Source: Macrostomum lignano (Eukaryota). Taken from it: a stretch of 64,000 nucleotides of DNA. This document shows, piece by piece, positions 6,901-61,130 of the stretch (its first letter is position 1; every line of letters starts with the position of its first letter). Both the position numbers and the translations under genes were made by a program. The stretch lies in NCBI GenBank assembly GCA_002269645.1, contig NIVC01000027.1, positions 558,001-622,000 of the forward strand. The letters run 5' to 3'. Below the pieces are notes generated by a model that saw only the letters and a program-made list of their open reading frames with translations, ran no database searches and was not told the origin of the DNA.

Positions 6901-6966
6901 CATAGTAATAGTGATGCTTAATTGAGCACAGCTTACAGTACTGTCTGCACCTTTCCTCCTGCGCAG

Positions 6967-11823: not shown

Positions 11824-12299
11824 CAGTTATACGAGTACACAGCTAAATATATGCTCTACTAAGATTGCTACAAGGTCCGGGCCCAGAGATAATTACAGGA
11901 TTCCGCAATGGGCGGGGCGGAAGCTGCTCCGTGATAAATGATTTTCAAATCCCTCCCAAGCGAGACTGCCAGGGCACGGAGGTTCGAGTCTGAATGCCCC
12001 TCATTTCCTGTCGCCCCGCCGCTGAGTAGCAATATTCGGGTGAGTCTCACTCAAATCAGCATTTCTAAAAATAGTACCGCAAATTGAATTGAAAATCTGC
12101 CAAAGCTTCCCCGCGAAACTGCTTTAGCCTTTGGGAAATCATGCTTTGCAGATTATTTTGCTTTCACTGTGCCTGTTGCTGATTTTGTTTTGAGCAAATT
12201 TCTCGATACTGTTCTCCAGTGTCTACGCCCTCTAATCTCCCTCTCTGCACCCCTCTATTCTATCTCTCTCCACCCTCTACGCATCCTCTCTGCATAGTA

Positions 12300-13312
12300 G
12301 CACCCTCGACTCTCCCTCCCCACCCTCTACTTTCTCTCCCCACCATCTACTTTCTCTCCCCATCTTCTACTCTCTCTCCCCACCCTCTACTCTCTCTCCC
12401 CACCCTCTACTCTCTCTCCCCACCATCTACTTTCTCTCCCCACCCTCTACTCTCTCTCCCCATCCTCTACTCTCTCTCCCCACCCTCTACTCTCCCTCCC
12501 CTCCCTCTACTCTCTCTCCCCACCATCTACTTTCTCTCCCCATCCTCTACTCTCTCTCCCCACCCTCTACTCTCCCTCCCCATCCTCTACTCTCCCTCTC
12601 CACCCTCTACTCTCTCTCCCCACCCTCTACTCTCTTTGTCCCCATCCTCTACTCTCTCTCCCCACCCTCTACTCTCTTTGTCCCCATCCTCTACTCTCCC
12701 TCTCCACCCTCTACTCTCTCTCCCCACCCTCTACTCTCTTTGTCCCCATCCTCTACTCTCCCTCCCCACCATCTACTCTCCCTCCCCACCCTCTACTCTC
12801 CCTCTCCACCCTCTACTCTCCCTCCCCACCCTCTACTCTCCCTCTCCACCCTCTACTCTCTCTCCCCACCCTCTACTCTCTCTCCCCACCCTCTACTCTC
12901 TTTCTCCCCATCCTCTACTCTCCCTCCCCATTCTCTACTCTCTCTCCCCACCCTCTACTCTCTCTCCCCACCATCTACTCTCCCTCCCCATCCTCTACTC
13001 TCTCTCCCCACCCTCTACTCTCTCTCCCCACCATCTACTCTCCCTCCCCATCCTCTACTCTCTCTCCCCACCCTCTACTCTCCCTCTCCACCCTCTACTC
13101 TCTCTCCCCACCCTCTACTCTCTCTCCCCACCCTCTACTCTCTTTCTCCCCATCCTCTACTCTCCCTCCCCATCCTCTACTCTCTCTCCCCACCCTCTAC
13201 TCTCTCTCCCCACCATCTACTCTCCCTCCCCATCCTCTACTCTCTCCCCACCCTCTACTCTCTCTCCCCACCATCTACTCTCCCTCCCCTCATCTTTCTA
13301 CTCTCCCTCCTC
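12300..13312. repeat. CT-rich minisatellite (about 21-22 bp, CCCCACCCTCTACTCTCTCT-type)
   Basis: Visible tandem units. Confidence 0.93.
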
Positions 13313-13842
13313 ACTGTGATTGAACCCAAGCAATCACAGAGAGATCAGTTCCGCTCCCCAGTTCACTCTTGCATTAAATTTCCGGTGCAATCCGATCCGA
13401 GACCAAAAGACAACAGCAGATCCGCTGCAAGCCTGCTCAAAATGAATTAATTTTGCTAGCAAAAGCTTGCAGAGCAGTCTAGAAGGGGCGGTCTGGACTG
13501 AGCAAGTGAATCAAGTGAATGCAGACAGTATGAATAAATATGTGTAGTTCAATTTAGCAATAATTTAGCATAGCTGACTGGGCAATGATGTAATAAAAAC
13601 AGTTGATCTGGGCAGACATAAAAGTGAGTGTATTTAAGTAGACCTGACTATAGATTTTACACATAACGACTCTGAAAGCGCATCGATAATATTTCGCGAG
13701 GCACTGAGTACGGCAATTAAAATACTCTACTTAAATAACACGAAAATATTATATTGTATTTATCCATTATTCAACTAACATGCACACTAGTCTACTTATA
13801 ACTGGCAGTAAGTAGACAGTATAGCATATGAATTGCACTCAC

Positions 13843-13990
13843 CAGATTAGCACCAATGCAGCGCATGCGGTGGCTACAAACAGAACCACAGCTGCCCCCA
13901 TCGGGATGGTCCACAGGGCGAGAACTGCCTCACTGTGGGCCTGATTGCTGGCGGCACCTGCTTGACAGCACGTGGGGGGGGTTTAAACAC
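13843..13990 (-). other. Possible exon encoding a transmembrane segment (unidentified gene)
   Basis: Acceptor tcccatgcag| at 13991 and donor |GTGAGT at 13842. One frame reads AVLALWTIPMGAAVVLFVATACAALVLI. Continuity with the upstream donor at about 14849 needs one extra base in the G8 run. Confidence 0.3.
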
Positions 13991-14004
13991 CTGCATGGGA
14001 GAAC

Positions 14005-14840
14005 AGGGAACACAAGGGGAATTTAGACACCTGGTGGCCAAACAGGGAACACAAGGGAATCGAGACACCTGAGCAAACAGGGAACACAAGGGAATTGAGA
14101 CACCTGGGCAAACAGGGAACACAAGGGAATTGAGACACCTGGGCAAACAGGGAACACAAGGGAATTGAGACACCTGAGAAAACAGGGAACACAGGGGAAT
14201 CGAGACACCTGGGCAAACAGGGAACACAGGGGAATTGAGACACCTGAGCAAACAGGGAACACAGGGGAATTGAGACACCTGGGCAAACAGGGAACACAGG
14301 GGAATTGAGACACCTGGGCAAACAGGGAACACAAGGGAATTGAGACACCTGGGCAAACAGGGAACACAAGGGAATTGAGACACCTGAGAAAACAGGGAAC
14401 ACAGGGGAATCGAGACACCTGGGCAAACAGGGAACACAGGGGAATTGAGACACCTGAGCAAACAGGGAACACAGGGGAATTGAGACACCTGGGCAAACAG
14501 GGAACACAGGGGAATTGAGACACCTGGGCAAACAGGGAAAACAGGGGAATTGAGACACCTGGGCAAACAGGGAACACAAGGGAATCGAGACACCTGGGCA
14601 AACAGGGAACACAGGGGAATTGAGACACCTGGGCAAACAGTGAACACAAGGGAATCGAGACACCTGGGCAAACAGGGAACACAGGGGAATTGAGACACCT
14701 GGGCAAACTGAGAACACAGGGGAATCGAGACACCTGGGCAAACAGGGAAAACAGGGGAATTGAGACACCTGGGCGAACAGGGAACGCAGGGGAATTGAGA
14801 CACCTGGGCAAACAGGGAACACAGGGAAATTGAGACACCT
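14005..14840. repeat. 35-bp minisatellite, array 2 (same family as 11414-11823), with a 210-bp higher-order duplication
   Basis: Visible tandem units. The variant unit CACCTGAGAA recurs at 14171 and 14381. Confidence 0.95.
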
Positions 14841-15323
14841 AGAACAGCTAAAAGATGCAATATCCTACCTTGAGCAGATCTCTGTCCACCAAAATATTGC
14901 TCCATCACATGAGCTTAGATTTTTGTTCGAACAGTAGAAATAATTTTCCCAGTGAAAAGAAAGTCAGCTTCGAGCGTGCCAGACTGTTTCCCGCTCTCAT
15001 AACGCAGACCCACAGTGCACAGATGCAGTACAAGAATTACAGAATTAGTTGCAGCCTATAGGAGGGACAAACAGAAAATCTTGCCAATCAAAATTCACAA
15101 GGCAGCTGTTCCATAGCTGGGGATTGTGTAGAGTTAGTGAGGATTTCCTTGTCTGCTTGCATAGCATACTGAGCGATGTGCAGAGAATGCAAAGCCAATT
15201 CTTTCGAGGCGTTGCTATACATGTACATGTATATATTAGAAAATGTAAATTGCATTTGAGCAATGGAGCTCTTTCAGATAAGGGTGGTGAATCTATGAAA
15301 GGAGTTGAGAGCGATTATAGTAG

Positions 15324-16013: not shown

Positions 16014-20752
<4,739 letters not shown>

Positions 20753-21296: not shown

Positions 21297-22320
21297 AGGT
21301 GAGATTGAGTGAATGATAAAAGGTGAGATTGAGAGTCGATGATAAAAGGTGAGATTGAGAGTCGATGATAAAAAGTGAGATTGAGTGGATGATAAAAGGT
21401 GAGATTGAGTCGATGATAAAGGTGAGATTGAGTGGATGATAAAAAGTGAGATTGAGAGTCGATGATAAAAAGTCAGATTGAGTGGATGATAAAAGGTGAG
21501 ATTGAGTCGATGATAAAGGTGAGATTGAGTGGATGATAAAAGGTGAGATTGAGAGTCGATGATAAAAGGTGAGATTGAGAGTCGATGATAAAAGGTGAGA
21601 TTGAGTGGATCATAAAAGGTGAGATTGAGGGGATCATAAAAGGTGAGATTGAGTGGATCATAAAAAGTGAGATTGACGGAATCATAAAAGGTGAGATTGA
21701 GGGGATCATAAAAGGTGAGATTGAGTGGATCATAAAAAGTGAGATTGACGGAATCATGAAAGGTGAGATTGAGGGGATCATAAGAGGTGAGATTGAGTGG
21801 ATCATAAAAGGTGAGATTGAGGGTATTATAAAAGGTGAGATTGAGGGGATCATAAAAGGTGAGATTGAGTGGATCATAAAAGGTGAGATTGAGTGGATCA
21901 TAAAAGGTGAGATTGAGTGGATCATAAAAGGTGAGATTGAGTGGATCATAAAAAGTGAGATTGAGTGAATCATAAAAGGTGAGATTGAGTGGATCATAAA
22001 AGGTGAGATTGAGGGGATTATAAAAGGTGAGATTGAGGGGATCATAAAAGGTGAGATTGAGGGGATCATAAAAGGTGAGATTGAGTGGATCATAAAAGGT
22101 GAGATTGAGTGGATCATAAAAGGTGAGATTGAGTGGATCATAAAAAGTGAGATTGAGTGAATCATAAAAGGTGAGATTGAGTGGATCATAAGAGGTGAGA
22201 TTGAGGGGATTATAAAAGGTGAGATTGAGGGGATCATAAGAGGTGAGATTGAGGGGATCATAAGAGGTGAGATTGAGGGGATCATAAGAGGTGAGATTGA
22301 GGGATCATAAGAGGTGAGAT
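21297..22320. repeat. 24-bp minisatellite (GAGTGGATCATAAAAGGTGAGATT)
   Basis: Visible tandem units. Confidence 0.95.
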
Positions 22321-23108: not shown

Positions 23109-23885
23109 GTGGATTATCGGGACGATTCTCTCACAGTGAATTATCGGGGCGATTCTCCCACAATGGATTATCGAGGCGATTATCTCAGAGTGGATTATCG
23201 GGGCGATTATCTCAGAGTGGATTATCGGGGCGATTATCTCACAGTGGATTATCGGGGCGATTCTCTCTCAGTGGATTATCGAGGCGATTATCTCAGAGTG
23301 GATTATCGGGGCGATTATCTCACAGTGGATTATCGGGGCGATTCTCTCTCAGTGGATTATCGAGGCGATTATCTCAGAGTGGATTATCGGGGCGATTATC
23401 TCAGTGGATTATCGGGGCGATTCTCTCTCAGTGGATTATCGGGGCGAGTCTCTTACAGGGGATTATCGGGGACGGGGAGATTCTCTCACAGTGGATTATC
23501 GGGGACGGGGAGATTTTCTCACAGTGGATTATCGGGGACGGGGAGATTCTCTCACAGTGGATTATCGGGGACGGGGAGATTCTCTCACAGTGGATTATCG
23601 GGGACGGGGAGATTCTCTCACAGTGGATTATCGGGGCGATTATCTCACAGTGGATTATCGGGGCGATTATCTCACAGTGGATTATCGGGGCGATTATCTC
23701 ACAGTGGATTATCGGGGCGATTATCTCACAGTGGATTATCGGGGCGATTATCTCACAGTGGATTATCGGGGCGATTATCTAACAGTGGATTATCGGGGCG
23801 ATTATCTCACAGTGGATTATCGGGGCGATCATCTCACAGTAGATTATCGGGGCGATTATCTCACAGTGGATTATCGGGGCGATTC
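23109..23885. repeat. 27-bp minisatellite (GTGGATTATCGGGGCGATTATCTCACA), just 3' of the MED23 stop
   Basis: Visible tandem units. Confidence 0.95.
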
Positions 23886-23929
23886 TCCCTAAGTCACCGG
23901 GAGCCAGTCTTCAGACTGAGCTTTTAGAC

Positions 23930-24280
23930 TCAGTTTTCAGACTGAGCGGGAAAGTTAGGCGCATCGGCCGGTCCGTCAGGCTGGTGACCCGGCGCGATGG
24001 ACCGTAGTCGGCTCTGCATGGAAGGGCTCAACCGCTCGATGACACTGGAGGCGACTCGACGAACCCCGTCGCCGACAAACATGTACTTGATGTGATAGAA
24101 ATAGTCGGCTAGGGCGTCCTGGTGCTCAAGACGGCCGGAGCAGGCGGCGTCCACCTCAGCCAGACAGTGGTAGAGCTCGGCCACCAGCTCGTTCTGCACT
24201 GAATTGCAGGCCCGGAGCAGATCGGCGAATAGGGGGCCGATGAGGTGGCAGGACAGCAGCAGCTGGGCCTCGCAGCGGAC
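23930..24280 (-). CDS. MED23: Mediator subunit 23, exon 14 (last)
   Basis: Acceptor cccgcag|GTC. EAQLLLSCHLIGP...DYFYHIKYMFVGDGVRR..IERLSPSMQSRLRSI matches the MED23 C-terminus (FLYHMKYMFTGDSVK..LKPALKLRLRFI). Confidence 0.93.
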   Translation of the reverse strand, partial: VRCEAQLLLSCHLIGPLFADLLRACNSVQNELVAELYHCLAEVDAACSGRLEHQDALADYFYHIKYMFVGDGVRRVASSVIERLSPSMQSRLRSIAPGHQPDGPADAPNFPAQSEN

Positions 24281-24309
24281 CTGCGGGTTTTTGGTTGGGG
24301 ATTGGTGGC

Positions 24310-25040
24310 AGGTGAATATGGGATTCTGGGATTATTGGGGTATGGGATATGGGATTCTGAGGGTATGGAATCTGGGATTCTGAGGGTATGGGATTCTTGG
24401 GGTACGGGATCTGGGATTCTGAGGGTATGGGATTCTTGGGGTACGGGATCTGGGATTCTGAGGGTATGGGATTCTTGGGGTACAGGATCTGGGATTCTGA
24501 GGGTATGGGATTGTTGGGGTACGGGATCTGGAATTCTGAGGGTTATGGGATTCTTGGGGTACGGGATCTGGGATTCTGAGGGTATGGGATCTGGAGATCT
24601 GGGATTCAGGGTCTGGGATTCCTGGGGTACGAGATCTGGGATTCTGAGGGTTATGGGATTCTTGGGGTATGGAATCTGGGATTCTGAGGTTATGGGATTC
24701 TTGGGGTACGAGATCTGGGATTCTGAGGGTATGGGATTCTTGGGGTATGGAATCTGGGATTCTGAGGGTATGGGATTCTTGGGGTACGAGATCTGGGATT
24801 CTGAGGGTATGGGATTCTTGGGGTATGGAATCTGGGATTCTGAGGGTATGGGATTCTTGGGGTACGAGATCTGGGATTCTGAGGGTATGGGATTCTTGGG
24901 GTATGGAATCTGGGATTCTGAGGTTATGGGATTCTTGGGGTACGGGATCTGGGATTCTGAGGGTATGGGATTCTTGGGGTACGGGATCTGGGATTCTGAG
25001 GGTATGGGATTCTTAGGGTACGGGGTTTTTGATTCTGGGA
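24310..25040. repeat. 39-bp minisatellite in MED23 intron 13
   Basis: GGATTCTGAGGGTATGGGATTCTTGGGGTACGGGATCTG units. Confidence 0.93.
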
Positions 25041-25090
25041 TTTAAATCGTAGGATCTAACAGTTAAAAATATGACAGTTACGGGAGTCAC

Positions 25091-29725: not shown

Positions 29726-29773
29726 TCCATCAACTATCTAACCCATCCACCCAACTCCCAGCCCACAACCAAC

Positions 29774-30220
29774 CTGCAGAGCGGGAGTGAGCAAGGCCTG
29801 AGCCTGCCTATACAAGCACAGCTCAGTGTCCAGCCCCAGCCGGTTAGCCTTGGCCAGAGTGACCAGGTTCTGCAGTAACAGGTGCCTCTGCATGGGTTCA
29901 ACGCTGTTCAAGTGATAGGTAGCTAGCTCGAACACAAAGGCCAACACTCTGCTTCCACCAGTGTTGCCAGCCTTAGTGAAGGCCTCCGTGAGTACAGATT
30001 TAGGCTGCAAATTCAAATCGTGATGCATGAGCACAGTGATCCTGGCGTACGTGTCCAGCACCACGGGACTGTCGGCATGGGTTGACAGCAGGTTGTACAG
30101 CAGACTGTTGATAGCCAGCAGTGACATTGTGGCTAACTGGCGTAGGCTGGAGTAAGATGGAGCAATGGCGTCTGATTGTTTGAGCGCTTCTACCAGCTTG
30201 GAGTTGAGCGGGCTGACCAC
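29774..30220 (-). CDS. MED23: MED23 exon 9
   Basis: cccgcag|GTG ... CAG|GTTGGT, phase 0 to 0. VLDTYARI and FELATYHLNSVEPMQRHLLL align with LVETYSRL and LEMFSYRMHHIQPHYRVQLL. Confidence 0.88.
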
Positions 30221-31092: not shown

Positions 31093-31246
31093 CTGGTTTT
31101 GGTTGAAGGGAGATGAATATTAGCGAAATGTTTGCATTGCTACTCAGTCAGTAGAATAGTTCGGGTATGTTGCAATATCTATCTGAGCCAGGTGAGTGTC
31201 TCAGTTGACGATATGCGAGATTAGGGAAAATAGCTGGCATACTTTG

Positions 31247-31555
31247 GGATCTGGGAGGCTGGCCCAGCAACTGAGGATCTGGGAGGCTGGCCCAGCAACT
31301 GAGGATCTGGGAGGCTGGCCCAGCAACTGAGGATCTGGGAGGCTGGCCCAGCAACTGAGGATCTGGGAGGCTGGCCCAGCAACTGAGGATCTGGGAGGCT
31401 TGCCTAGCAACTGAGGATCTGGGAGGCTGGCCCAGCAACTGACACTCTGGGAGGCTGGCCCAGCAACTGACACTCTGGGAGGCTGGCCCAGCAACTGACA
31501 CTCTGGGAGGCTGGCCCAGCAACTGACACTCTGGGAGGCTGGCCCAGAGCAACTG
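31247..31555. repeat. 28-bp minisatellite (CTGGGAGGCTGGCCCAGCAACTGAGGAT) in MED23 intron 7
   Basis: Visible tandem units abutting the exon 7 donor. Confidence 0.93.
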
Positions 31556-31565
31556 AGCTCAATAC

Positions 31566-32030
31566 CTTCCAAAACTCCAAGACACATCTCGGGAAAGCGC
31601 ACGAGATGCAGCCGACAAAGATGGATGCTGTACAGTCCCAGATGACGCCACATCATGTCTGCCCAAGCCATCTCGCTATCGGATTCGCAGGCCTCGGTCT
31701 CGTCGGCAGTCCACAGAATGGTGTCAATCAAGCATCGCTCCAGAAACAGACACCTGGAGATCTTGCTAGCCCTTGGTGCCGTGTGCAGAGACAGCAGACT
31801 CAACAACAGGTCCATGCTGCCCTGCTGCGTGAGCACAGCCCTGATGAGGCTGGTATGCGGCCTCTGCAAGCACCTGGCATAGGGCAGGGGGCCCTTCAAA
31901 TCCAGGGCGCCAGTCGAGGCCAGCAGATTCACGGGCACATTGGTGACGCTGCTGGGCTGCGGATGCTGCAGAATGGCCGGCGGCATGCAGTAGTTGCCAA
32001 CCCCGGCTATGGGAACGATTTGACGGATCA
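31566..32030 (-). CDS. MED23: MED23 exon 7
   Basis: ccccgcag|TG ... G|GTATTG, phase 1 to 1. LKGPLPY..CLQRPHTSLIRAVLTQ aligns with LKGLLPYDKDLFEPQTALLRYVLEQ. Confidence 0.9.
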
Positions 32031-32101
32031 CTGCGGGGGCGGAGCAGGCGGGTGAGTCATCTGCTGCTCTGATCCAGCAGGAATGATTAGCAGCACCTTA
32101 C

Positions 32102-32171: not shown

Positions 32172-33760
32172 CTGAGGGAGGAAAGTTATTGAGGATCTGC
32201 TGCTGGACTGATTGTGAATTTATCGATCTGTCTGTATAAAATATAGACACCCGTACGACTCTACTACGACTAGGACTACTACTACAACTTTTCTACTATT
32301 AGTCTACTACTGAAATACAGTGCCCAGTTGCCTGTAAACAGGGTCTGAGCAGACAGCAGTCTGTGAACAGGGTCTGAGCAGACAGCAGTCTGTGAACAGG
32401 GTCTGAGCAGACAGCAGCCTGTGAACAGGGTCTGAGCAGACAGCAGTCTGTGAACAGACGCCGCCAACTGCGACTCGTGACTTGTCTGGCTACATTAATA
32501 ACGTCTACCAGTACGACTCTACTAAGACTACGATTACTACTGAGGCAGAATCCTTATAAACTATTTATATTACTTATAACAGTAGTTAAACCCGAATTTT
32601 AATTACAGCCAATCAGAAATTTTCTTCCCATTCGTTTAAATTCCCTAAACAATTCAATTTCTTTTGTTATAATTTTAGTAATTGTTAAAATGCGTCCCAC
32701 CTTCCCCAAATTTTGTGTATAAAAGGAATCAGGTTAACGCTAAAAAATATAACCTCGGCTCTCGTTCTCAATATTTGCTTTTAACTATTCTTGCGAGAAG
32801 CTTTTAGTGAAACAAATCTAAATTTGGCTAAGACTTATCTCGCCATTTCTTTAATAGGGAAACTTGAGGTCGTGGAGACCCAAAACTAGGGATCGGAATA
32901 GGGAAACTTGAGGTCGTGGAGACCCAAAAATTAGGAATCTGACTAGAGGTCGTAAAGACCCTGAGTTGGGAGAGGTTTAAGGTCGTGCAGACCCTAAGAA
33001 AGCCGTGTAGGCTAAGCCATAGGCATTAGGCGTTAGGAGATTAGGCATTAGGGGAATAAATTAGCTACCGCTGGACACCCTTGATCCTCGGAAAACGCCA
33101 GACTTTTGGACTGAATTAGGAAATTAGACAGTGTCTTACCGCTCGGGCACTACACGCTATCACAAGGTTTCTAGGAAATCGTGAGTTCGAAATTTTCTGG
33201 GAAAAACTCTTAGTTTATGACAGCCAATACTACTGAAAGTAGGCAGCTTAGCGATAATTCGTAGACAGAGTCATTAGGCCTACGACAACTTGGTGGCATT
33301 AGTAGGATTTAAGTAAGGAGCCAGAAGAACTACGACAACTTGGTGGCTTTACGGTGGGATTGCAGCTAGGAACTATTAGGTCTACAACACTACGTTTGTG
33401 ACCAGATGCCGTTAACTGCTACTTGTGGTCGGTCTGGCCTACTCAAACCAATTTAATCTCGTATGTGCATTAAATTATTTACACTTCGTTAACCAGTCAG
33501 AGTTCTCAGTGCTCTATAACAATTAATTATTTTTCTAAATAACTTATTTGTAGTATTTTTCAAGCTGGTTAGTCACATTTCTAAGCTGTAATGCCTTAAC
33601 CAATCAGAGTGCTTTAATTCCCTTTTTGTATTAGCTATATGTGTACCGTGCATTTTTACACAACGTTGCTCAGTGCACCCAGCCAAAGCTGGTACATAAA
33701 TAATAATGATATGAGGAAATAACTTCACAACTAAAATAATTGCTACTTTATATACCCTCA

Positions 33761-33808
33761 AAATAAACCCTGACGAAGGCCATGATTTGGCCGAAATATC
33801 GGTTATTT
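33761..33808 (+). ncRNA. Minimal type-I hammerhead ribozyme motif 1
   Basis: Stem I AAATA(A)ACC/GGTTATTT; core CTGACGA; stem II GGCCA/TGGCC; GAAA; palindromic stem III ATAT; predicted cleavage after AUC (33800). Confidence 0.8.
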
Positions 33809-34182
33809 CGAAGTTTGACACCTGACAACTTCAATCTTCCGTGTGCGTGGTTGCGGCTTCAGAGTGTCTTATACTCGTAGATATCTCTTCTATTTATCTA
33901 TTTATCGATCTTTCGATCTATATATCCATCTATCTTTTTATCTATCTATGGATCAAATATACTTCATTAACTACTAAACGGCAGTGCCCAGTTGTCTGTG
34001 TCCAGGGACTGAGCAGACGGTGATCTGTGTCCAGACGCCGCCAACTGATACTTGTGGCTTGCCAGGATAAACAATTAAATTACTGCATATGCATCAGTAT
34101 GTAATTATTTACCCTTCTTTAACCAGTTTAAGTGAGGTCTTAGTGCTCTGTAACAATTTAATTTACTTTAAAAACATTAGAC

Positions 34183-34370
34183 ACCAGTGAATGCGGCGGA
34201 AAGATCCTCCCAACGCTGCGCATTGAGGGACAGGAATTAACCTACGACCCGACACCCACGTTCCTTGGCCTTCGCCTAGACGACCAACTGACTTTCGCCA
34301 ACCATATAGAGGCAGTGCGCAAAAGATGGCCACCAGGCGGCGTTGTCTGCAAAGTCTCGTTGGCAAATCC
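34183..34370 (+). mobile_element. Fragment of a non-LTR retrotransposon RT (late RT/thumb), Ingi/I-like
   Basis: LRIEGQELTYDPTPTFLGLRLDDQLTFANHIEAVRK then, after a frameshift, MATRRRCLQSLVGKS. Confidence 0.7.
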
Positions 34371-34582
34371 CAGGAAAATACTTCATCTTATTAAAGAGGA
34401 ACCAATTTTTTGGAAGAATCCGGTGATGAAGAAGTCTTGCCTACAGAGTTTTTGGTGGTGGCTGACTCAGCCCCTAATGCTGCTGCTTCTGGGCTTCCAG
34501 GCGGCCCTGCTTCTGCTGATTCTGGGCTTTCCGGCACTCCCGCTGCTGCTGCTGCCGAGGGCGCCCCTGCTGGTGTTGCTAT

Positions 34583-37420
34583 CACTGTAAACTCCAGGGG
34601 TCCACGTGGAGTTCGTGGCCAAAAATGGCTGATTTGGAGTCCGCCCTCAATAAGCTAGAGCGCAATCCTCGGCTTGGAACGGACCTTATGTTAAAGGCGA
34701 ATTTCGTCAACAAGTTTTTAACTTACATCATCAATGACGTCTTTAACAATTATAAAAGCCGGCAAGATCCGTACCTTTATGGAAAAGAGCTAAATGACAC
34801 AAACATCTCCATCGTTTCTATGTACCCAGGAATGCGAGACGGGTCGAGCGATGGGACTGTTTTTTGGTGGCAGAAAATTCCCCGAATATTCAAAGAAATA
34901 CGGTGAAAATTCCAGGAGTTCTGCAGCCTGATAGTCAAAACAATGCGCCAAAAATTTGGACGCAAAAAGCGTGCTGCTAATTCCAGCAACTCCGGCATTT
35001 CCGCGTCGTGCATGGCGGAAAATGATGAGGATAGTGACGAAGAAAACGTAGTCCCATCTGCAAATAAGCGCCGAAGAATTGCTACCATCGTAGATGCGCC
35101 CGATGATGACGAAAACGTAGTACAAGCAAAGCGCCAGCAAGTCAACTGTGAGGATGCTGAGAGTACGACTACATCGACAAGCAAGCTTGTCAAAAGCGTC
35201 ATTTTTGGAGATGTGGAATGCGTTCCTGAAAGTCACGAAGTTGACCGAATTAGGTTGAACAAAAATTTCCACACAATGGAAATCGAAGAGGTATTAAGCA
35301 ATATGAAAAGTCTATTTAGTGTGCGAGTCGTGCGTTGCCAAGAGAGAACTGTTGAAGAGGAGGCTGAATTGTATAAGCCATTATCACTGCCACGTGTTCA
35401 GTTGCAAGAGGCATTTCTTATGATTCAGTTGTATAACTCTAGACGCAAGGCTGACTATGTGTTTCCTCGAACACCTGAGGATATTGAACAAAATGTATGC
35501 GGTGCACTCCGGCATGTGTGGCAAGAACGAGATGCAATGAAGCGGTACTTGTATTGCTAGCCGTTTCTGAACGCTGAATGTGATAACGACGACACCATTC
35601 TAATAAACGGCCTTTGCTTGCACCTTGATCGATTAAGGATTGACCCTGCGAAACTTTTTTGATACTGAGCTGCTAATTCAAATTCTGAAGGAAGGCGAAA
35701 GTTAGCGCGGCATTTCGGTAAACGGTGCAAAATTTGGGTACGATTGTACCAAGGATACGGTGGTCGCAATTGCAATCTGTTCCGTATCGTTTACCTGCAG
35801 CATGTGCCCTATCTGGAAGCCTTCCTCGAGACATATCAGAAGTATTGTGAAAACTACCACGACGTGATGCTGTGTCCCGCGAACCTGCCCAGTCGCTGAT
35901 TGCTACACTTTGTTAAAAAAACTTTTAACTTAGCATTCGACATTTTACTCGTATAATGAAAGTCTATGTTCCCCCTTAAGCACCTACTAAGCTTAAGGTT
36001 TATTAATGTCTCCACTAATAAAAAACCTTTTAAACTTACCTTAATACGTTTAACCCAATTACCGGCTACCTTAATAAACAAATGACAATTTTTGTTAATA
36101 CAGAATTAATACTGCATAGCTATTTTTATACTGTTTATTCTTATATCAAGCTGAAGCTTGTAAATGGTATGTCTGCAACACTGGATCATGTATGACATTA
36201 TGTAATATAAACAATATTTTTTATAAATTATTGTTTTTTGTAATGTTAGCTTCTAATTTCCGTGTAGTTCCATGTAATTTTTGCATACTTTTTGACGTTG
36301 ACGTAATAATTGAAATAGTTTCATGCGTGTGTATGTATGTTTTATTAGTATTTCACATTGCGAAAAAATATTGGAAACACCAAGTAATGAACGTGCATGT
36401 CAATATACACTGCATGTGATAATTATAATACGATAGGGAGCATTCATATGACAGACAGACATTAGTGTTGTAATTAATGGTTACAAATTCAAGACTTGCA
36501 TATCGTTTAATTTTCTTCGTGTCAGTGATTCTTTCATATTATAATACAAATATGATTGTTGTTCTCGATTGTGTGCGTTAACTTTTTATTAAAAAGGATT
36601 TGCATCAGTTGATCTAACTTCTAAGCGTGCGAAAGCCAATAAATCTGCATTTAGCTGGTCAACCTTGCAAACGAAATTACGCTCGTACATGCGGACCCTT
36701 TTTACATTCGGACCTTAGGGTCCGTATATAGCGACGCCGCGGACCCTAACATACGGACCCCTACTGGACCTTTTTTCGGACCTTTAGGGTCCGTATATAG
36801 CGACGCTGCGGACCCTAACATACGGACCCCTACTGGACCTTTTTTCGGACCTATACATTCGGACCTTTAGGGTCCGTATATAGCGACGCTGCGGACCCTA
36901 ACATACGGACCCCTGCCGGACCTTTTTTCGGACATTTAGGGTCCGTATATAGCGACGCTGCGGACCCTAACATACGGACCCCTGTCGGACCTTTTTTCGG
37001 ACATTTAGGGTCCGTATATAGCGACGCCGCGGACCCTAACATACGGACCCCTACTGGACCTTTTTTCGGATCCATACATTCGGACATTTAGGGTCCGTAT
37101 ATAGCGACGCCGCGGACCCTAACATACCGACCCCTACTTGACCTTTTTTCGGACCTATACATTCGGACCTTTAGGGTCCGTATATAGCGACGCCGCGGAC
37201 CCTAACATACCGACCCCTACTTGACCTTTTTTCGGACCTATATACATTCGGACCTTTAGGGTCCGTATTTAGCGACGCCGCGGACCCTAACATACGGACC
37301 CCTACTGGACCTTTTTCGGATCCATACATTCGGACCTTTAGGGTCCGTATATAGCGACGCCGCGGACCCTAACATACGGACCCCTACTGGACCTTTTTTG
37401 GATCCCTGGAGTTTACAGTG
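34583..37420 (+). mobile_element. CACTG-ended (EnSpm/CACTA-like) non-autonomous DNA transposon with a decayed internal ORF
   Basis: 21-bp TIRs CACTGTAAACTCCAGGGGTCC and GGATCCCTGGAGTTTACAGTG (1 mismatch). Internal frame 34625-35560 is broken by one TGA. Subterminal repeat array at the right end. TSD not clear (AT vs TA). Confidence 0.7.
36693..37400. repeat. Self-complementary subterminal tandem array, about 68-82 bp unit (GGGTCCGTAT...ATACGGACCC)
   Basis: Visible tandem units ending at the right TIR. Confidence 0.92.
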
Positions 37421-37624
37421 TACAATTGAGCCGGTGGAGCCAATTCCTGATTGAATCAAGGAGTCTGATCAGACTATCGTGGCGGCAAATATTCTACCCG
37501 GCGTGTCGTTTTTCCTACCGCCTGTCAGCGGTGCCGGGTATGCAGTGACTTAGAAGAACATATATATTTTATTTCCCACTAACAATATAAATTCGTTGCA
37601 TTTTGTCATTAATAATTATACTAA

Positions 37625-37665
37625 GAACCCTGACGAAGGCCAATCCACAGCCGAAGTATCGGTTC
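37625..37665 (+). ncRNA. Minimal type-I hammerhead motif 2 (GAAG variant)
   Basis: Stem I GAACC/GGTTC; CTGACGA; stem II GGC/GCC; GAAG; AUC site at 37660. Confidence 0.65.
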
Positions 37666-38188
37666 ACTAAATTGATTTATATTAGTTATGACCTCTGCGT
37701 CTCTCTTTGAGATTTCTTGGCTAACTTAGTTAGAGCTGCTACTGTGTGAGTGGTCTTTTTCAAACGTCTATTTATCTATCAATGAATCGAATATGCTTTA
37801 TCAACTACTGAACGGCACTGCCCAGTTGTCTGTGTCCAGGGACTGAGCAGACGGTGGTCTACTCGTATGTCCAGACGCCGCCAACTGATAGCCTGATAGC
37901 CTAAGTGAGGTCTCAGTGCTCTATAACAATTTAATTTACTTTTTTTAAAACGTATTCATTATACCTTTCAAGCTGTTTAGTCACACTTTAATAATCGTTA
38001 AATGTGACATTATATAGCTCCTAATGCCTATACTTTTTGTGTGAGGCATTAGCCGCAAAGCTCTAACCAATCAGTGTGCTTTAATACACTTTTTACACAA
38101 CACTGCTTAGTGCACCCGGACAAAGCTGGTGTATAAATAGCCTGGTTATGATGCAATAACTTCACTGTCAAAATTTTAATATTTTTCT

Positions 38189-38227
38189 CAACCTGATGAA
38201 GGCCACGATTTTGCCGAAATATTGGTC
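38189..38227 (+). ncRNA. Minimal type-I hammerhead motif 3 (degenerate stem I)
   Basis: CTGATGA; stem II GGC/GCC; GAAA; ATAT; AUU site at 38223. Confidence 0.6.
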
Positions 38228-38669
38228 ATTTTGAATAAAAGTTCGACTTCAGACGTGCTTAGTTTTTTTTTCAAGTGAGCGGATTGCAATTTCAAACTGC
38301 TTTATTCATATTTATCGATAGAATAGATATCGATAGCTGGTGAAACCCGCAAATCGCAGCATCAGCAGCAGTCAAACCGTAGGAGACCTGATACCCAGTA
38401 CCATCTTCGGAGGGATGGGCGCCGGTCAAGGTCGCAAGACAGAGGCTCTGAGAATGTCACCATCATTGTACTCGTACTCGTAAACGTCGAAGTGCGAAAG
38501 GTGCGATGACAGTAGACAAGGCCCGGCTGGTTCGGTTGGTCAAGAAACTCTTCCCGATCTGTTCATCACTATGAAAACTGTCAGACCATCCCAAAATAAC
38601 TGCAAAGCAAAACAGAACAACTCAAGACTTTTATTCGACCGGCCATGCCAACCAAGAGGACTGAGGAGA

Positions 38670-38969
38670 ACGTCCGATTGAACGCAGACACCTGAGATAT
38701 GAGCACCCAGGACGCAATGCAAAGTCATTGTGAAGAATGAATCTTTTGAACGACTTCCACAATTAAGGGAAGCGTTCAAGGGAGTCGACAGCGAAAGACG
38801 GGTTCAACTGTGACTCGACGGTGTTACGGTAAGTTACGAATTGTGTTTGAAAAAAATGGAACTTGGAAATCCTCGGCTGTTGGCTGCGTACACCAGATCG
38901 AACTCTATAAAAGACATTCTGTGCCCATCCAAACTCCCTGCACTGACTGCACGTGATCAAGCCGAGTAG
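38670..38969 (+). mobile_element. Decayed 3' end of a Penelope-like element ORF
   Basis: HLRYEHPG...MELGNPRLLAAYTRSNSIKDILCPSKL-stop resembles the PLE post-RT motif AYxRxxNLxDxLxPSKL. It contains internal stops/frameshifts and is followed by hammerhead 4. Confidence 0.5.
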
Positions 38970-39103
38970 GTTATCAGTTCATCTCTCATCGCTTCGCTCC
39001 CATCACTTCTAACAATTTATTGATTTTAATGTCCCCAGCAACTCTCTTTGAGTGCTCATATTTTATAAACCATTGCTTTACTGTTTCTAGCAAAATAAAT
39101 TTT

Positions 39104-39145
39104 CGGACCCTGACGAAAGCTACGATTTGGCCGAAAGTTTGGTCG
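39104..39145 (+). ncRNA. Minimal type-I hammerhead motif 4
   Basis: Stem I GACC/GGTC; CTGACGA; stem II GCTA/TGGC; GAAA; predicted site after 39140. Confidence 0.65.
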
Positions 39146-39269
39146 TCTACTTTATCAACAAATCAAATTGTACCTTCTCTCACTGTGTGTGCGGTTTTTT
39201 AATTGATTTCGTCTATCTATCTATCTATAAATCTATCTATCTATCTATAAATCAGCCCAGCAGCCTCAC

Positions 39270-39374
39270 CGGATGCAGATTGGTCTGCTCAGCCGGGGGC
39301 AGTTTAGTCACTTCGTGCAGAGCAAAATAGGCGGGCATCAAGCAAAGCGAGCGATCCATCAGGGTGGTGATGAG
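39270..39374 (-). CDS. MED23: MED23 exon 5
   Basis: cccgcag|CTC ... CCG|GTGAGG, phase 0 to 0. LMDRSLCLMPAYFALHEV aligns with ILERNACLLPAYFAVTEI. Confidence 0.9.
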
Positions 39375-39599
39375 CTGCGGGTTCAGTGGGTGTCACAGAC
39401 AGTTATAAAGCAATAATTTCGAGTTGTAGCTCGTAAGATAAATATTTGATTTAAAAGAAATCGACAGTAAGCAACTTTATTACACACTGGTAAACTTCTA
39501 AATCTTACTAAAGCTTCAATAAATTCCATAGAAATTCTCTACTTATTTCTTGTATTTATTAGCCTCAATTGTCGGATAAAAAAACAACTTGTACAAGTT

Positions 39600-39790: not shown

Positions 39791-39823
39791 TTGTTAAACA
39801 AACAAAACAATATTGCAACAAAC

Positions 39824-40022
39824 CTTGAACGCAGGAACAAAGACTTTGTCTTCACCTTCGCTGAAAGTCTTGTACAAGCCCAACACTTTGCCAAACAGAT
39901 CCCTGCAGCCTTTGTAGTCCATCTGTCTGACCAGACGATCCATCACTGTTACGGCCTCTTTGAAGAAGGCCGGATTTCGCATGATATCGTCGTGAGAGAC
40001 CAACAACTCGTCACAGATGTGC
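39824..40022 (-). CDS. MED23: MED23 exon 4
   Basis: ctactcag|G ... AAG|GTTTGT, phase 2 to 0. MDYKGCRDL aligns with VDYKGVRDL. Confidence 0.9.
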
Positions 40023-51315: not shown

Positions 51316-51698
51316 ATGGACCACGCGGCGATGCTGCCGTTGCTTGCGGCATCTCAGACGTCCGATGAGGAACTCGAAGGATTCGATCATGGCAACGCCC
51401 GCGCCGATACGGGAATCCTTCGACGCTGTCGGTTGGAGGCCACCGAGGAGACGCGCCTGTTGAATGCCTACGCCGACGTGGCTGAAACGACTGAAGCTTC
51501 AAGACGAGGCTACAGATCGATGTTCAGCGAGGAGCCGGGAAGGCGCGGCCTGGAGAAGGTGCTGAGCAGCTGCGCAAGTCAGCAGCCGCTGCCGGTCAGC
51601 CCGACGGCGCGGTGCAGCCTTTTTAGCGAGGCCATCTTCATGGAGCAGGCAATGGTGCCCGACAGACATGCCGTCACCGCTTTTAGCGAGGACCCACC

Positions 51699-51702
<4 letters not shown>
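51316..51702 (+). CDS. Hypothetical 128-aa protein (unrecognised)
   Basis: GC-rich, coding-like ORF from ATG 51316; no family recognised. Confidence 0.25.
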
Positions 51703-52075
<373 letters not shown>

Positions 52076-52341
52076 TCGACACACGGAGAAACAATCCTTA
52101 CTTAAACTCTTTTCTATATTACATGTACTTAAAGAAATCTGTTGACTCTGTATCCAGTATTCTAAACTGAGCACATTATTTTCTCTCGATAGTCACCTTG
52201 TGCTGAATTTGTATTTCATAACGACTTGTAAATTTCCCCAGCCGTTTCTGTGCCAATCGTCGAACCTACTGCAACCTATGAAAACATTATTATAGGAGCT
52301 CGAAGAGCCAATAATATTGGCTAAGAAAATACAAAAATACA

Positions 52342-53900
52342 ACTGACTGACTGACTGACTGACTGACTGACTGACTGACTGACTGACTGACTGACTGACT
52401 GACTGACTGACTGACTTGAGTGAGTGGGTGACTGACTGACTGACTGACTGACTGACTGACTGACTGACTGACTGACTGACTGACTGACTGACTGACTGAC
52501 TTGAGTGAGTGGGTGACTGACTGACTGACTGACTTGAGTGAGTGGATGACTGACTGACTGACTGACTGACTGACTGACTGACTGACTGACTTGAGCGAGT
52601 GGGTGACTGACTGACTGACTGACTGACTGACTGACTGACTGACTGACTGACTGACTGACTGACTTGAGTGAGTGGGTGACTGACTGACTGACTGACTGAC
52701 TGACTGACTGACTGACTGACTGACTGACTGACTTGAGTGAGTGGGTGACTGACTGACTGACTGACTGACTGACTGACTGACTGACTGACTGACTGACTGA
52801 CTGACTGACTGACTTGAGTGAGTGGGTGACTGACTGACTGACTGACTGACTGACTGACTGACTGACTGACTGACTGACTGACTGACTGACTGACTTGAGT
52901 GAGTGGATGACTGACTGACTGACTGACTGACTGACTGACTGACTGACTTGAGTGAGTGGGTGACTGACTGACTGACTGACTGACTGACTTGAGTGAGTGG
53001 GTGACTGACTGACTGACTGACTGACTGACTGACTGACTGACTGACTGACTGTCTGACTGACTGACTGACTTGAGTGAGTGGGTGACTGACTGACTGACTG
53101 ACTGACTGACTGACTGACTGACTGACTGACTGACTGACTGACTGACTTGAGTGAGTGGGTGACTGACTGACTGACTGACTGACTGACTGACTGACTGACT
53201 GACTGACTGACTTGAGTGAGTGGGTGACTGACTGACTGACTGACTGACTGACTGACTGACTGACTGACTGACTGACTGACTGACTGACTGACTGACTGAC
53301 TGACTGACTGACTGACTGACTGACTGACTGACTGACTGACTGACTGACTGACTGACTGACTGACTGACTGACTGACTGACTGACTGACTGACTGACTGAC
53401 TGACTGACTGACTGACTGACTGACTGACTGACTGACTGACTGACTGACTGACTGACTGACTGACTGACTTGAGTGAGTGGGTGACTGACTGACTGACTGA
53501 CTGACTGACTGACTGACTGACTGACTGACTGACTGACTGACTGACTGACTGACTGACTGACTGACTGACTGACTGACTGACTGACTGACTGACTGACTGA
53601 CTGACTGACTGACTGACTGACTGACTGACTGACTGACTGACTGACTGACTGACTGACTGACTGACTGACTGACTGACTGACTTGAGTGAGTGGGTGACTG
53701 ACTGACTGACTGACTGACTGACTGACTGACTGACTGACTGACTGACTGACTGACTGACTGACTGACTGACTGACTGACTGACTGACTGACTGACTGACTG
53801 ACTGACTGACTGACTGACTGACTGACTGACTGACTGACTGACTGACTGACTGACTGACTGACTGACCGACTGACTGACTGACTGACTGACTGACTGACTG
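52342..53900. repeat. (GACT)n microsatellite punctuated by TGAGTGAGTGGGT units
   Basis: Visible. Confidence 0.98.
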
Positions 53901-54582
53901 AATGACTGACTGGCTGGCTGTGACTTTTCTTTCCGACTTGAAGTTTGGCTGGTTTTAGTTCAAGCATCTGCAATGTATATTATTTTCTTTGCTGCTGCCT
54001 GACAGCTAGCGCACACTACTGCAAGTAGTGAGTGGCCGGAATAGTGCGATTTGGGTAATTAACAGTGTGAATTCCTGACACTGACCCTGGCACTTACGGC
54101 TGGATTCTAGACACCCTGTCTCTGACATTCTTGCAACCATTCTCATGAGACAGGTCAAAGTTGAGTATTTAACCGTCTTACATTACTGAGTATAAATCTC
54201 ACATATCTCACATAGTAGTAATCAGTACGTTTTTGCGATTTAAAAGAAAGAAATAACAAAATATGACAGACAAATAAAATTATTGAAATGGCAAACTTTA
54301 AATAGCTCAAATGAGCTAGTTTAGCTGTGGCTGTTTTTTAAACAGGAATAGACTTCTTGTTGAAAAATGAACAATGGAGTGAACAAAGAATATATACAGT
54401 GCTGATGAAATTTCTGTGATTATAACACTGTTGCACAATTTTTAAGACATTTTTACGATAAAATATGTTTAATTACAGGAGCTGTTTGGCAGAAAATTAC
54501 TCGTAAAAATAACAATGAAATAAATTCGAGTCAACCGAAATTTTTTTTTTTGGTTCTGACAGGCGGCATCCAGAGTCATCAA

Positions 54583-54722
54583 TCAGTAGGCTTTGACTCG
54601 GAATGAGCAGCCCTCGGTGAGGCAGACCTTGCCTCCAGTTGGCCGGCACAGCACAGTGCTGCAGCCTGAGCAGACCACCACCGTCTGGGCGTGTGAGAAC
54701 ACCGTGCTCACCTTCAGACAGC
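54583..54722 (-). CDS. RPS27: 40S ribosomal protein S27, exon 2
   Basis: ccccgcag|GC; (G)[45 protein letters not shown]-stop. Confidence 0.95.
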
Positions 54723-54741
54723 CTGCGGGGAGAGGTTAGCA

Positions 54742-55262
54742 GCTGACGGATCAGAAAGGGCCTCATGACAATGCTTCGGCTCTCCCAGAGTGACGGATCA
54801 GAAAGGGATTCATGACAATGCTTCGGCTCTCCCAGAGTGACGGATCAGAAAGGGACTCATGACAATGCTTCGGTTCTCCCAGAGTGACGGATCAGAAATG
54901 GCCTCATGACAATGCTTGGGCTCTCCCATAGTGACGGATCAGAAAGGGACTCATGACAATGCTTGGGCTCTTCCAGAGTGACGGATCAGAAATGGCCTCA
55001 TGACAATGCTTGGGCTCTCCCAGAGTGACGGATCAGAAATGGCCTCATGACAATTCTGCGGTTCTCCCAGAGTGACGGATCAGAAATGGCCTCATGACAA
55101 TGCTTCGGTTCTCCCAGAATGACGGATCAGAAACGGCCTCATGACAATGCTACGGCTCTCCCAGAATGACGGATCAGGAACGGCCTCATGACAATGCTTC
55201 GGCTCTCTCAGAGTGACGGATCAGAAATGGCCTCATGACAATGCTTCGGCTCTCCCAGAGTG
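54742..55262. repeat. 47-bp minisatellite filling the RPS27 intron
   Basis: TGACGGATCAGAAA... recurs at a 47-bp period. Confidence 0.93.
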
Positions 55263-55375
55263 GCGGCAGCTGACGAATCAGAAATTTTCTCCCCAATACC
55301 CAAGTATTCCCAAGGATACCCAAATATACCTTCATAGCCTTCATACAGGGAACAGAGAAATGCAATAGCAAGTAC

Positions 55376-55490
55376 CTGGACACTTGACATCAAAGAATTT
55401 CGAGTTTGGCAACTGAACCAGCCTTTTCTTCTTGTGGCGCCGCTTCTCCTGACTGAGCGACGGGTGTAGAAGGTCCCTGGCACGGGGCAT
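55376..55490 (-). CDS. RPS27: 40S ribosomal protein S27, exon 1 (spliced product 84 aa)
   Basis: [39 protein letters not shown]|GTACTT, phase 1 matches exon 2. Missed by the ORF track. Confidence 0.95.
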
Positions 55491-59990: not shown

Positions 59991-60444
59991 GTCAGAAAGT
60001 GATGTGGCACAAGTTACTTTAAATGTACATGTACATGTATGTATTTACTAACTTACCTATCAGTTCAATATTTCAGCATATTCAATTTATCGATCGCGTA
60101 TCTTACACAAAAATATTTTTTTAACAGTACTTTTCTAAAAATCATTCTTGGAACAATAATATCGATTTACACAGGATCAGGTGCCCCGCATTTTCTATGC
60201 GCTTAGCATAAATTATTTAGCAACATCTTGTCAGTAACATGGGCATGCCTTCAGTAATTCCAATTTTCAGTGGCTCCAATGAGTCAGAATAGGGGTGCAA
60301 TTTTCTAATAACATTCCCTGCTTTCATGGCTGTCAATCAAGAAGTGGAATTTGTCAAAAAGTTACTCAATGACACCTGTTAAATCAGCTGAAAATAAGTT
60401 TTCTTGCTGGTGAATTTATTTGATTTTGCATTTTTTCTAGAAGC

Positions 60445-61130
60445 GTTCTCCTCCCCTTCGAGACCCTTCCCTCTCCTCCCTTCCTCTCCTCCCTTCCCTC
60501 TCCTCCCTTCCATCTCCTCCCTTCCGTCTCCTCCCTTCCATCTTCTCCCTTCCCTCTCCTACCTTCCCTCTCCTCCCTTCCATCTCCTCCTTCCGTCTCC
60601 TCTTTTCCATCTCCTCCCTTCCATCTTCTCCCTTCCTCTCCTCCCTTCCGTCTCCTCCCTTCCGTCTCCTCCCTTCCCAGACCCTTCCATCTCCTCTGTT
60701 CCATCTCCTTCCTTCCCTCAGGGATTCCCTCTTCCTTCCCTCCTTCCTTCCCTTCCGTCTCCTCCCTTCCGTCTCCTCCCTTCCCTCTCCTCCCTTCCCA
60801 GACCCTTCCCTCTACTCCCTTCCCTCTCCTCCGTTCCATCTCCTCCCTTCCCAGACCCTTCCTATTCCTCCGTTCCATCTCCTTCCTTCCCTCTCCTCCC
60901 TTCCCAGACCCTTGCTTCTCCTCCCTTCTCAGACCCTTCCATCTCCTCCCTTCCGGGACCCTTCCTTATCCTCCCTTCGCAGACCCTTCCCTCTCCTCCT
61001 TTCCATCTCCTCCCTTTCATCTCCTCCCTTCCCAGACCCTTCTCTCTCCTCCCTTCCCAGACCCTTCCTTCTCCTCCCTTCCCAGACCCTTCCTTCTCCT
61101 TCCTTCCCAGACCCTTGCCTCTCTCTTCTG
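60445..61130. repeat. CT-rich minisatellite (CTCCTCCCTTCC core)
   Basis: Visible. Confidence 0.9.

Follow-up and report, generated by a model that had tools for sequence, protein, structure and literature searches.

We analysed a 64,000-nt stretch of the genome of the flatworm Macrostomum lignano (GenBank assembly GCA_002269645.1, contig NIVC01000027.1, positions 558,001 to 622,000), hereafter the window, in which four hammerhead ribozyme motifs lie inside an intron of the gene MED23. MED23 is encoded on the minus strand, and all four motifs are on the plus strand, antisense to it. The motifs are not independent copies; they are parts of three remnants of one family of non-coding repeats with a unit of ~540-630 nt. 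We consider it probable that the locus holds fossil copies of a non-coding, non-autonomous retroelement from the world of the Penelope-like elements (PLEs), in the form of a pseudo-long terminal repeat (pseudo-LTR) or a 'retrozyme-like' unit. The ribozyme system at the locus is dead or nearly so and probably inactive, since it comprises one intact motif without a partner within 3.8 kb, three mutated motifs and no reverse transcriptase (RT) gene.

Hammerhead motifs in the MED23 intron

The initial annotation had reported four co-oriented motifs antisense to MED23, each with stem I, CUGANGA, a stem II hairpin, GAAA, a very short stem III and the second strand of stem I, in this order. All four were found at the reported positions, and a repeat finder assigned them to a single family. 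They align without gaps over 50 nt and comprise the following.

33766-33804, plus strand: hammerhead copy 1, the sole complete minimal type-I motif of the four, as judged by a strict descriptor and by fold energy
37625-37665, plus strand: hammerhead copy 2, with G at position 15.1 (GAAG) in an otherwise intact core
38188-38228, plus strand: hammerhead copy 3, with all catalytic positions intact (CUGAUGA, GAAAUAUU)
39105-39145, plus strand: hammerhead copy 4, with an intact core, A.C at 10.1-11.1, and AGUU in place of the palindromic AUAU

Copy 1 was the only match to a strict minimal-hammerhead descriptor when both strands of the window were scanned; 0.013 matches are expected per 64-kb window (300 first-order Markov simulations). 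Its helix I consists of AACC/GGTT (33766-33769 with 33801-33804, 4 bp) and is followed by the core CUGACGA (33770-33776), an unpaired A (33777), and helix II, formed by GGCCA/TGGCC with the loop TGATT (33778-33792). GAAA (33793-33796), UA at positions U15.2 and A16.2 (33797-33798), U16.1 (33799) and C17 (33800) complete the motif, and cleavage is predicted between 33800 and 33801. The hammerhead fold has an energy of -12.5 kcal/mol, compared with a minimum free energy of -12.6 kcal/mol for the same sequence (ViennaRNA). The region can also form a 7-bp hairpin (33792-33810) that would sequester G12-A15.1 together with the cleavage site. A G.U-containing version of this hairpin is present in copy 3, and the pairing may be an alternative conformation or a coincidence.

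The remaining copies are damaged in different ways. In copy 2, helix I is 5 bp long (GAACC/GGTTC) and helix II is reduced to GGC/GCC (3 bp) with a 9-nt loop. In copy 3, pairing in helix I is disrupted (C-G, A.G, A-U, C.C); the hammerhead fold has an energy of +4.8 kcal/mol and, with helix I destroyed, cannot form. Copy 4, located ~135 nt into the intron from the inferred MED23 splice donor, has a 4-bp helix I (GACC/GGTC) and a minimum-energy fold that differs from the hammerhead fold. The earlier description of four minimal type-I hammerheads thus holds for copy 1, which is complete, whereas copies 2-4 are defective and the four are not equivalent intact ribozymes.

Taken position by position, the catalytic core (C3 U4 G5 A6 N7 G8 A9...G12 A13 A14 A15.1...U16.1 H17) is present at 14 of 14 positions in copies 1 and 3. 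An open helix I of 4-5 bp is formed in copies 1, 2 and 4 and not in copy 3. All four copies have an unpaired A between positions 9 and 10.1, and three of them (copies 1-3) have the G10.1-C11.1 pair. None has a helix III hairpin. A palindromic UA at 15.2-16.2 is found in three of four copies, as AUAU in copies 1 and 3 and as GUAU in copy 2; the AGUU of copy 4 is non-palindromic.

A repeat unit carries the motifs

The three remnants that contain the motifs, and the promoter-like blocks within two of them, are arranged as follows.

33397-34169, plus strand: remnant A, a partial tandem with a 5'-truncated unit (33397-33882) that has copy 1 near its 3' end
37620-38336, plus strand: remnant B, consisting of copy 2 and its tail (to ~37766), a TCTA-like junction (37767-37790) and one full unit
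39101-39254, plus strand: remnant C, consisting of copy 4, a ~55-nt tail with GTGTG.G.GGT, and (TCTA)n (39206-39254) abutting a MED23 exon
38067-38139, plus strand: promoter-like module of remnant B, with the CCAAT box AACCAATCAG at 38067-38071 and TATAAATA at 38132-38139
33600-33604 (CCAAT) and 33696-33702 (ATAAATA), plus strand: promoter-like counterpart in remnant A; both blocks are conserved between the remnants

Beyond its truncated unit, remnant A continues with (TCTA)n at 33883-33955 and the first ~215 nt of a second unit, where homology stops at 34169. The full unit of remnant B closes with copy 3, its tail and a TATCGAT-type repeat (38309-38336). Copies 2 and 3 are therefore 563 nt apart and flank a single unit, an arrangement as in a PLE pseudo-LTR partial tandem. 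When the two parts of remnant A are joined (33765-34169 followed by 33536-33764, 634 nt), the composite aligns end-to-end with 37625-38187 (563 nt) at 79% identity. The tail of remnant C matches that of copy 2 with a score of 35, compared with a shuffle maximum of 24. Sequence directly upstream of copies 2 and 4 showed no homology to the unit, so these two fragments begin close to the hammerhead.

From these alignments, the unit starts after a (TCTA)n-type microsatellite with a well-conserved 5' module (GGCAGTGCCCAGTTGTCTGTGTCCAGGGACTGAGCAGAC..., 86-95% identity between copies). Several hairpins, the conserved CCAAT and TATA-like elements, the hammerhead, a tail and the next microsatellite follow in this order. 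Successive copies run head to tail, with such a microsatellite between them. The hammerhead lies 60-75 nt downstream of the TATA-like element (in remnant B, 61 nt separate it from the CUGA of copy 3) and 75-110 nt from the unit 3' end; the 3' tail of 75-110 nt has the common motif GTGTG.G.GGT. By motif resemblance, the CCAAT/TATA block is a putative promoter. Another CCAAT/TATA pair at 32608-32725 was rejected as a third such block, with an alignment score of 29 against a shuffle maximum of 36.

Several structural traits of PLEs are thus present: partial tandems (A, B), a hammerhead near the 3' end, truncation (A, C), and TCTA-type repeats at every junction. The monomer between copies 2 and 3 folds better than shuffled sequences (z = -3.1), and so does its minus strand (z = -3.3). 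ARAGORN detected no tRNA-derived or short interspersed element head in the unit.

Conservation and specificity of the motifs

Substitutions have spared the catalytic positions. Among the four copies, these are off consensus in 2 of 56 alignment cells, compared with 22 of 108 at other hammerhead positions (Fisher p=0.004). Variation falls on N7, H17 (C/U), loop 2 and outer helix I, where hammerheads tolerate change. Mean pairwise identity is 72% over the 41-nt hammerhead block and 49% over the adjoining tail. The four copies were also recovered independently through homology of the carrier unit, and no copy lacking the core was found in the window.

The specificity of the searches differed widely. 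The loose core pattern CTGANGAR...YGAA is uninformative, with 5 matches in the window and 3.95 expected. A more specific 24-base pattern, CTGAYGAAGGCN{5,11}GCCGAAATATYGG, which matches copies 1 and 3, was absent both from 596 Gb of bacterial and archaeal genomes and from IMG/VR. Weak Rfam matches to STnc150, ST7-OT3_4 and sR38 were dismissed as chance. Several lines of evidence thus indicate more than a chance resemblance to hammerheads.

The same variant in environmental contigs

The 24-base pattern had four matches in JGI metagenome contigs. One of them (L005, 69% GC) was rejected as a relative; it lacks helix I and is a chance match. The other three contigs are AT-rich (39-41% GC), and in each of them helices I and II are correct and carry compensatory differences.

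Ga0075479_10057994 (L003): motif at 268-304, minus strand; open reading frame (ORF) at 588-1643, minus strand; the motif lies 286 nt 3' of the ORF stop codon on the same strand
Ga0126336_10030068 (L004): motif at 3620-3671, minus strand; hammerhead variant with compensatory helices
Ga0075429_100297523 (L006): motif at 289-334, plus strand; ORF at 438-1403, minus strand; hammerhead variant with compensatory helices

Helix I in these contigs is CC/GG, UGGCC/GGCCA or GAUC/GGUC, and helix II is GGCU/AGCC, GGCUAA/UUAGCC or GGCC/GGCC. When the three environmental sequences were combined with the four local copies, 86% of the cells were paired and four pairs showed a double change; 15-24 of 500 shuffles scored as high. 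The alignment of the seven sequences was fitted to the model, so the covariation support that it gives is modest.

By eye, the C-terminus of the L003 ORF resembles the end of a PLE RT followed by a GIY-YIG nuclease (RYRDDTF; VIYRVPCGNCEKAYVGQTKR...R.GEH). The ORF had no match in PDB, its exact sequence is absent from the protein collection searched, and its identity as a PLE is unconfirmed. The position of the motif just downstream of this ORF is suggestive of a tie between the hammerhead variant and PLEs. On one of the other two contigs (L004 or L006), the motif adjoins a piggyBac-type transposase gene (DDE_Tnp_1_7, E=1e-38).

The host gene and the strand of the motifs

Matches to the Pfam Med23 profile (PF11573) run in descending coordinate order along the window, which places MED23 on the minus strand. 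The matching exons are listed in the order of the gene.

39794-40006, minus strand: MED23 exon match, Pfam Med23 profile positions 108-148
39255-39392, minus strand: MED23 exon 5' of the host intron, profile positions 166-199, with a likely GTGAG donor near 39280
31201-32031 (exon listed as 31576-32031), minus strand: MED23 exon 3' of the host intron, profile positions 224-359
29738-30220, minus strand: MED23 exon match, profile positions 561-636
23993-24286, minus strand: MED23 exon match, profile positions 1234-1304

The host intron is ~7.2 kb long, with bounds at about 32031 and 39280, and encloses all four motifs. The Pfam matches and their strands thus bear out the earlier placement of the motifs in a MED23 intron and antisense to the gene, while the label 'intron 5' was not confirmed. 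The N-terminal part of MED23 was not located in the window, and the upstream exons are large. A tblastn search with a human MED23 query gave the same exon layout and is taken as a lead only. A MED23 protein query against an index of 5.8 billion proteins returned no relatives. A 28/84-bp tandem repeat (31247-31594) lies, together with a MED23 exon, within one long minus-strand ORF; the Pfam match ends upstream of the repeat (at about 31576), and the repeat is probably intronic though in frame. The locus has no evident consequence for MED23.

It had been proposed that the shared antisense orientation reflects selection, with sense insertions purged because they would cut the pre-mRNA. The four motifs represent at most three remnants, two of the motifs flank one unit, and the probability that all are antisense is at least 0.125. 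The sole study of genic distribution that we found, a Xenopus preprint, has retrozymes depleted from introns and exons overall and, in the parts consulted, makes no statement about strand. The purging idea gets no support from this locus, though it is not refuted.

Other sequences share the intron with the remnants, and two could be identified in the 3.4 kb between remnants A and B. An ORF at 34625-35560 (plus strand) is interrupted by an in-frame stop at 34904-34906. It shares 40-46% identity with the central portion of a small family of proteins (~450-570 aa) with an N-terminal CIDE-N domain, and represents a pseudogene fragment or else a nested gene. Directly upstream of remnant B lies a 69/83-bp minisatellite (36689-37405) with abundant GGACC/GGTCC palindromes. 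Minus-strand hammerhead matches in its 83-bp repeat (E 0.14-0.9) were rejected: the repeat has no CUGANGA core, and the GGACC palindromes explain the matches. A possible RT fragment of a long interspersed nuclear element (LINE), noticed by eye at 34190-34400, was supported neither by Pfam nor by tblastn with the LINE of the window itself and was rejected.

Other features of the window

That LINE has an intact 961-aa ORF2 at 17742-20627 (plus strand) with RT and RNase H domains and a zinc-knuckle-like end, preceded by upstream ORFs at 16337-17508. Many M. lignano UniRef proteins, some of them annotated as host-domain fusions, match it at 98-100% identity, and it looks like a young, possibly active family that contaminates gene models. 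Long minisatellite arrays (5347-6084, 11216-14908, 21473-22285, 23109-25045, 51499-53973 and 60384-63533) are open in several frames and yield spurious ORFs of 100-550 aa, which agrees with the high tandem-repeat content reported for the genome. A two-exon gene of the TENT5/FAM46 type occupies 4032-8372 (plus strand). Its 467-aa ORF (6969-8372, plus strand) is 100% identical to the M. lignano protein BOX15_Mlig028556g3, a TENT5/FAM46-type nucleotidyltransferase. RPS27-like exons at 54676-55490 (minus strand) were recognised by peptide strings only. An exact look-up of two ORFs of the window returned no record.

Discussion

The motifs closely resemble the minimal hammerheads of PLEs, which are found in animals from cnidarians to reptiles and number about 2,000 in Schistosoma mansoni, also a flatworm (PMC4209133). 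These ribozymes have three traits that the descriptor of that study does not impose: an unpaired nucleotide separating positions 9 and 10.1, a G10.1-C11.1 pair and a palindromic 15.2-16.2 (PMC4209133). The M. lignano copies share the unpaired base and the G10.1-C11.1 pair, as well as the type-I topology, the absence of a helix III hairpin, an AUAU palindrome that implies dimer action, and a 4-5-bp helix I without a defined loop 1. They are likewise highly variable, and they lie as direct repeats near the unit 3' end in a flatworm host. The carrier differs; it is a ~550-nt non-coding unit, and no RT/GIY-YIG ORF is present here. Helix II is 4-5 bp long, compared with 7-8 bp in the main Schistosoma families, and helix III would consist of A-U pairs throughout. 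Viroid hammerheads, too, are described with an unpaired base at the 5' end of helix II, which is compatible with catalysis (De la Pena & Flores 2001, as cited in PMC4209133); those, as presented in that citation, are type III ribozymes with a full helix III.

Two further systems resemble the carrier. Metazoan non-LTR retrozymes are non-coding, AT-rich, head-to-tail repeats with a type-I hammerhead per unit, as here (PMC7229834; Li et al. 2026 preprint, 10.64898/2026.07.22.740005). PLEs are presumed to mobilise them, and in phylogenetic terms retrozymes and the pseudo-LTR are close (PMC7229834; 10.64898/2026.07.22.740005). Their hammerheads are canonical type-I motifs with contacts between loop 1 and loop 2, whereas the copies described here are of the minimal type; their units measure 150-450 nt and often form long arrays, whereas those at this locus measure 540-630 nt and occur as partial dimers only, separated by microsatellites. 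MRC1 of Chlamys elements and other non-autonomous PLE derivatives similarly form non-coding partial tandems or head-to-tail multicopy insertions with microsatellite junctions, and the pseudo-LTR is believed to contain their promoter and transcription start site (Craig et al. 2021, PMC8557442). The latter belong to a green-alga lineage and mostly lack hammerheads, and the likeness noted here is one of architecture. We read the carrier as PLE-type because its partial tandems, 3'-end hammerhead, 5' truncation and microsatellite junctions match the features described in PMC8557442.

A number of observations weigh against this reading. Neither ORFs nor Pfam domains of RT or GIY-YIG type were found in 34170-37620 or 38236-39100, and the locus does not classify as an autonomous PLE. 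Because both domains are absent, the link to PLEs is drawn by analogy and through one environmental contig, whose GIY-YIG segment falls below threshold (Pfam E=0.12). The minimum-energy structure of copy 1 is the competing hairpin CGAAAUA/UAUUUCG, which is as stable as the hammerhead fold. A trans helix III of AUAU/AUAU would consist of four A-U/U-A pairs at +1.6 kcal/mol by itself, weaker than the C/G-containing palindromes ACGU and AGCU evaluated alongside. The Rfam hammerhead models (Hammerhead_1, _3, _II, HH9 and HH10) gave no gathering-score match to any copy, and none at E<=10 either across 13 kb or in the 81 nt surrounding copy 1; our guess is that the absent helix III hairpin and the extra base after A9 account for this. 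The best-conserved modules of the unit, at 86-95% identity, lie outside the hammerhead. The covariation that had been noted in stem I exists as individual pairs (in copy 4 the 2.4/1.4 pair changes from A-U to G-C, and copy 2 has one extra G-C) but is not significant among the four copies, with two double-change pairs and 193 of 500 shuffles as high. Finally, a covariance model built from the four copies detected none beyond these, either in the window or in 48.8 kb of additional M. lignano DNA (L001, L002).

One alternative is that the motifs are a chance resemblance, in an ordinary interspersed repeat with CUGANGA...GAAA and flanking complementarity that was never a ribozyme. In its favour, the loose core is common, one of four copies passes the strict descriptor, Rfam is silent, local covariation is not significant, and the copies were first found by a core search, which biases towards conserved cores. 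We nevertheless judge this explanation decidedly improbable, given the low expectation of the strict descriptor, the sparing of the catalytic positions, the recovery of the copies through unit homology with no core-less copy in the window, and the minimal-hammerhead traits beyond what the descriptor demands (the G-C closing pair at 10.1-11.1 and the palindromic 15.2-16.2). The 24-base pattern, absent from the prokaryotic DNA searched, moreover recurs with compensatory helices in three unrelated eukaryote-like contigs. A ribozyme exapted by the host is hardly credible. It would process an antisense or nested transcript, such as that of the CIDE-N-like ORF, or would be kept because sense copies would cut the MED23 pre-mRNA. 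All four copies are indeed antisense to MED23, and copy 1 has a promoter-like block upstream of it and the plus-strand ORF about 820 nt downstream. This has to be set against three or fewer insertion events (p at least 0.125 for a shared orientation), damage to three of the four motifs, the stop within the nested ORF, and the overall depletion from introns and exons in Xenopus, in a source that, as far as consulted, is silent on strand.

A functional non-LTR retrozyme, whose unit between copies 2 and 3 would today be transcribed and cleave itself to give a ~563-nt circular RNA, is improbable, although metazoan retrozymes behave in this way (PMC7229834), two hammerheads stand 563 nt apart around one full unit, the monomer folds better than shuffles, and a CCAAT/TATA block lies upstream of copy 3. 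Copy 2 has G15.1 and copy 3 lacks helix I; because both are defective, the two complete motifs in consecutive units that define published retrozymes are not found here. The motif is of the minimal PLE type and not the canonical type I with the loop-loop contacts that define retrozymes, the unit (563-634 nt) exceeds the 150-450 nt reported, and the equally good folding of the minus strand deprives the fold signal of strand specificity. By the published definition, the unit falls outside the non-LTR retrozymes. It is very improbable, in turn, that copies 1 and 2 are the pseudo-LTRs of a degraded autonomous PLE around a former RT/GIY-YIG ORF. They share an orientation, and their spacing of 3,860 nt fits the ~3 kb between paired minimal hammerheads of Schistosoma PLEs, but the interior consists of the CIDE-N-family fragment, the 83-bp minisatellite and sequence without a Pfam domain in any frame tested, shows no trace of RT or GIY-YIG, and separates remnants that are each bounded by their own microsatellite junction.

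If the locus does hold fossils of a non-autonomous PLE-type element, live members of the family may act as proposed in the literature for the minimal hammerheads of PLEs. A longer-than-unit transcript would contain two hammerheads, each without a helix III of its own, which would pair through the palindromic A15.1-U15.2-A16.2-U16.1, and each hammerhead would cleave after position 17. The unit-length RNA freed in this way would bear a 5'-OH and a 2',3'-cyclic phosphate and might be circularised; an autonomous PLE would provide in trans the RT/GIY-YIG protein that copies and inserts it. Strong autonomous cleavage is unlikely, given the all-A/U helix III and the low in vitro activity reported for minimal hammerheads (PMC4209133).

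A bolder proposal is that a lineage-specific family of non-autonomous PLE satellites of ~550 nt is still active in M. lignano, each satellite having a CCAAT/TATA RNA polymerase II promoter 60-75 nt upstream of a minimal hammerhead with an all-A/U helix III. We regard this as unlikely at present. If true, each unit would be both a transcription unit and a processing site, in which the ribozyme would trim a short capped leader to give a unit-length or circular RNA, and the family would bridge PLE pseudo-LTRs and the shorter canonical retrozymes as an intermediate.

The initial annotation had described a hammerhead-bearing mobile RNA family that might be undescribed in this lineage. A PLE-type motif in a repeated, mobile-element-like unit is what we find, and the novelty holds only narrowly. 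We found no paper on hammerhead ribozymes in Macrostomum in the literature searched, and the genome paper refers to neither ribozymes nor Penelope; reports of retrozyme-like repeats exist for platyhelminths generally (PMC7229834). The finding is real but ordinary, in that the kind of ribozyme is already known from PLEs. It adds a free-living model flatworm, M. lignano of the Macrostomorpha, to the animals with PLE-type minimal hammerheads. The ~550-nt carrier unit and the covariance model could be used to annotate the family in a genome that is more than half repetitive. The 2014 description of minimal hammerheads left open whether they cleave as dimers and need host factors (PMC4209133), and because M. 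lignano is tractable to transgenesis, an intact member of the family could be used to test both in vivo.

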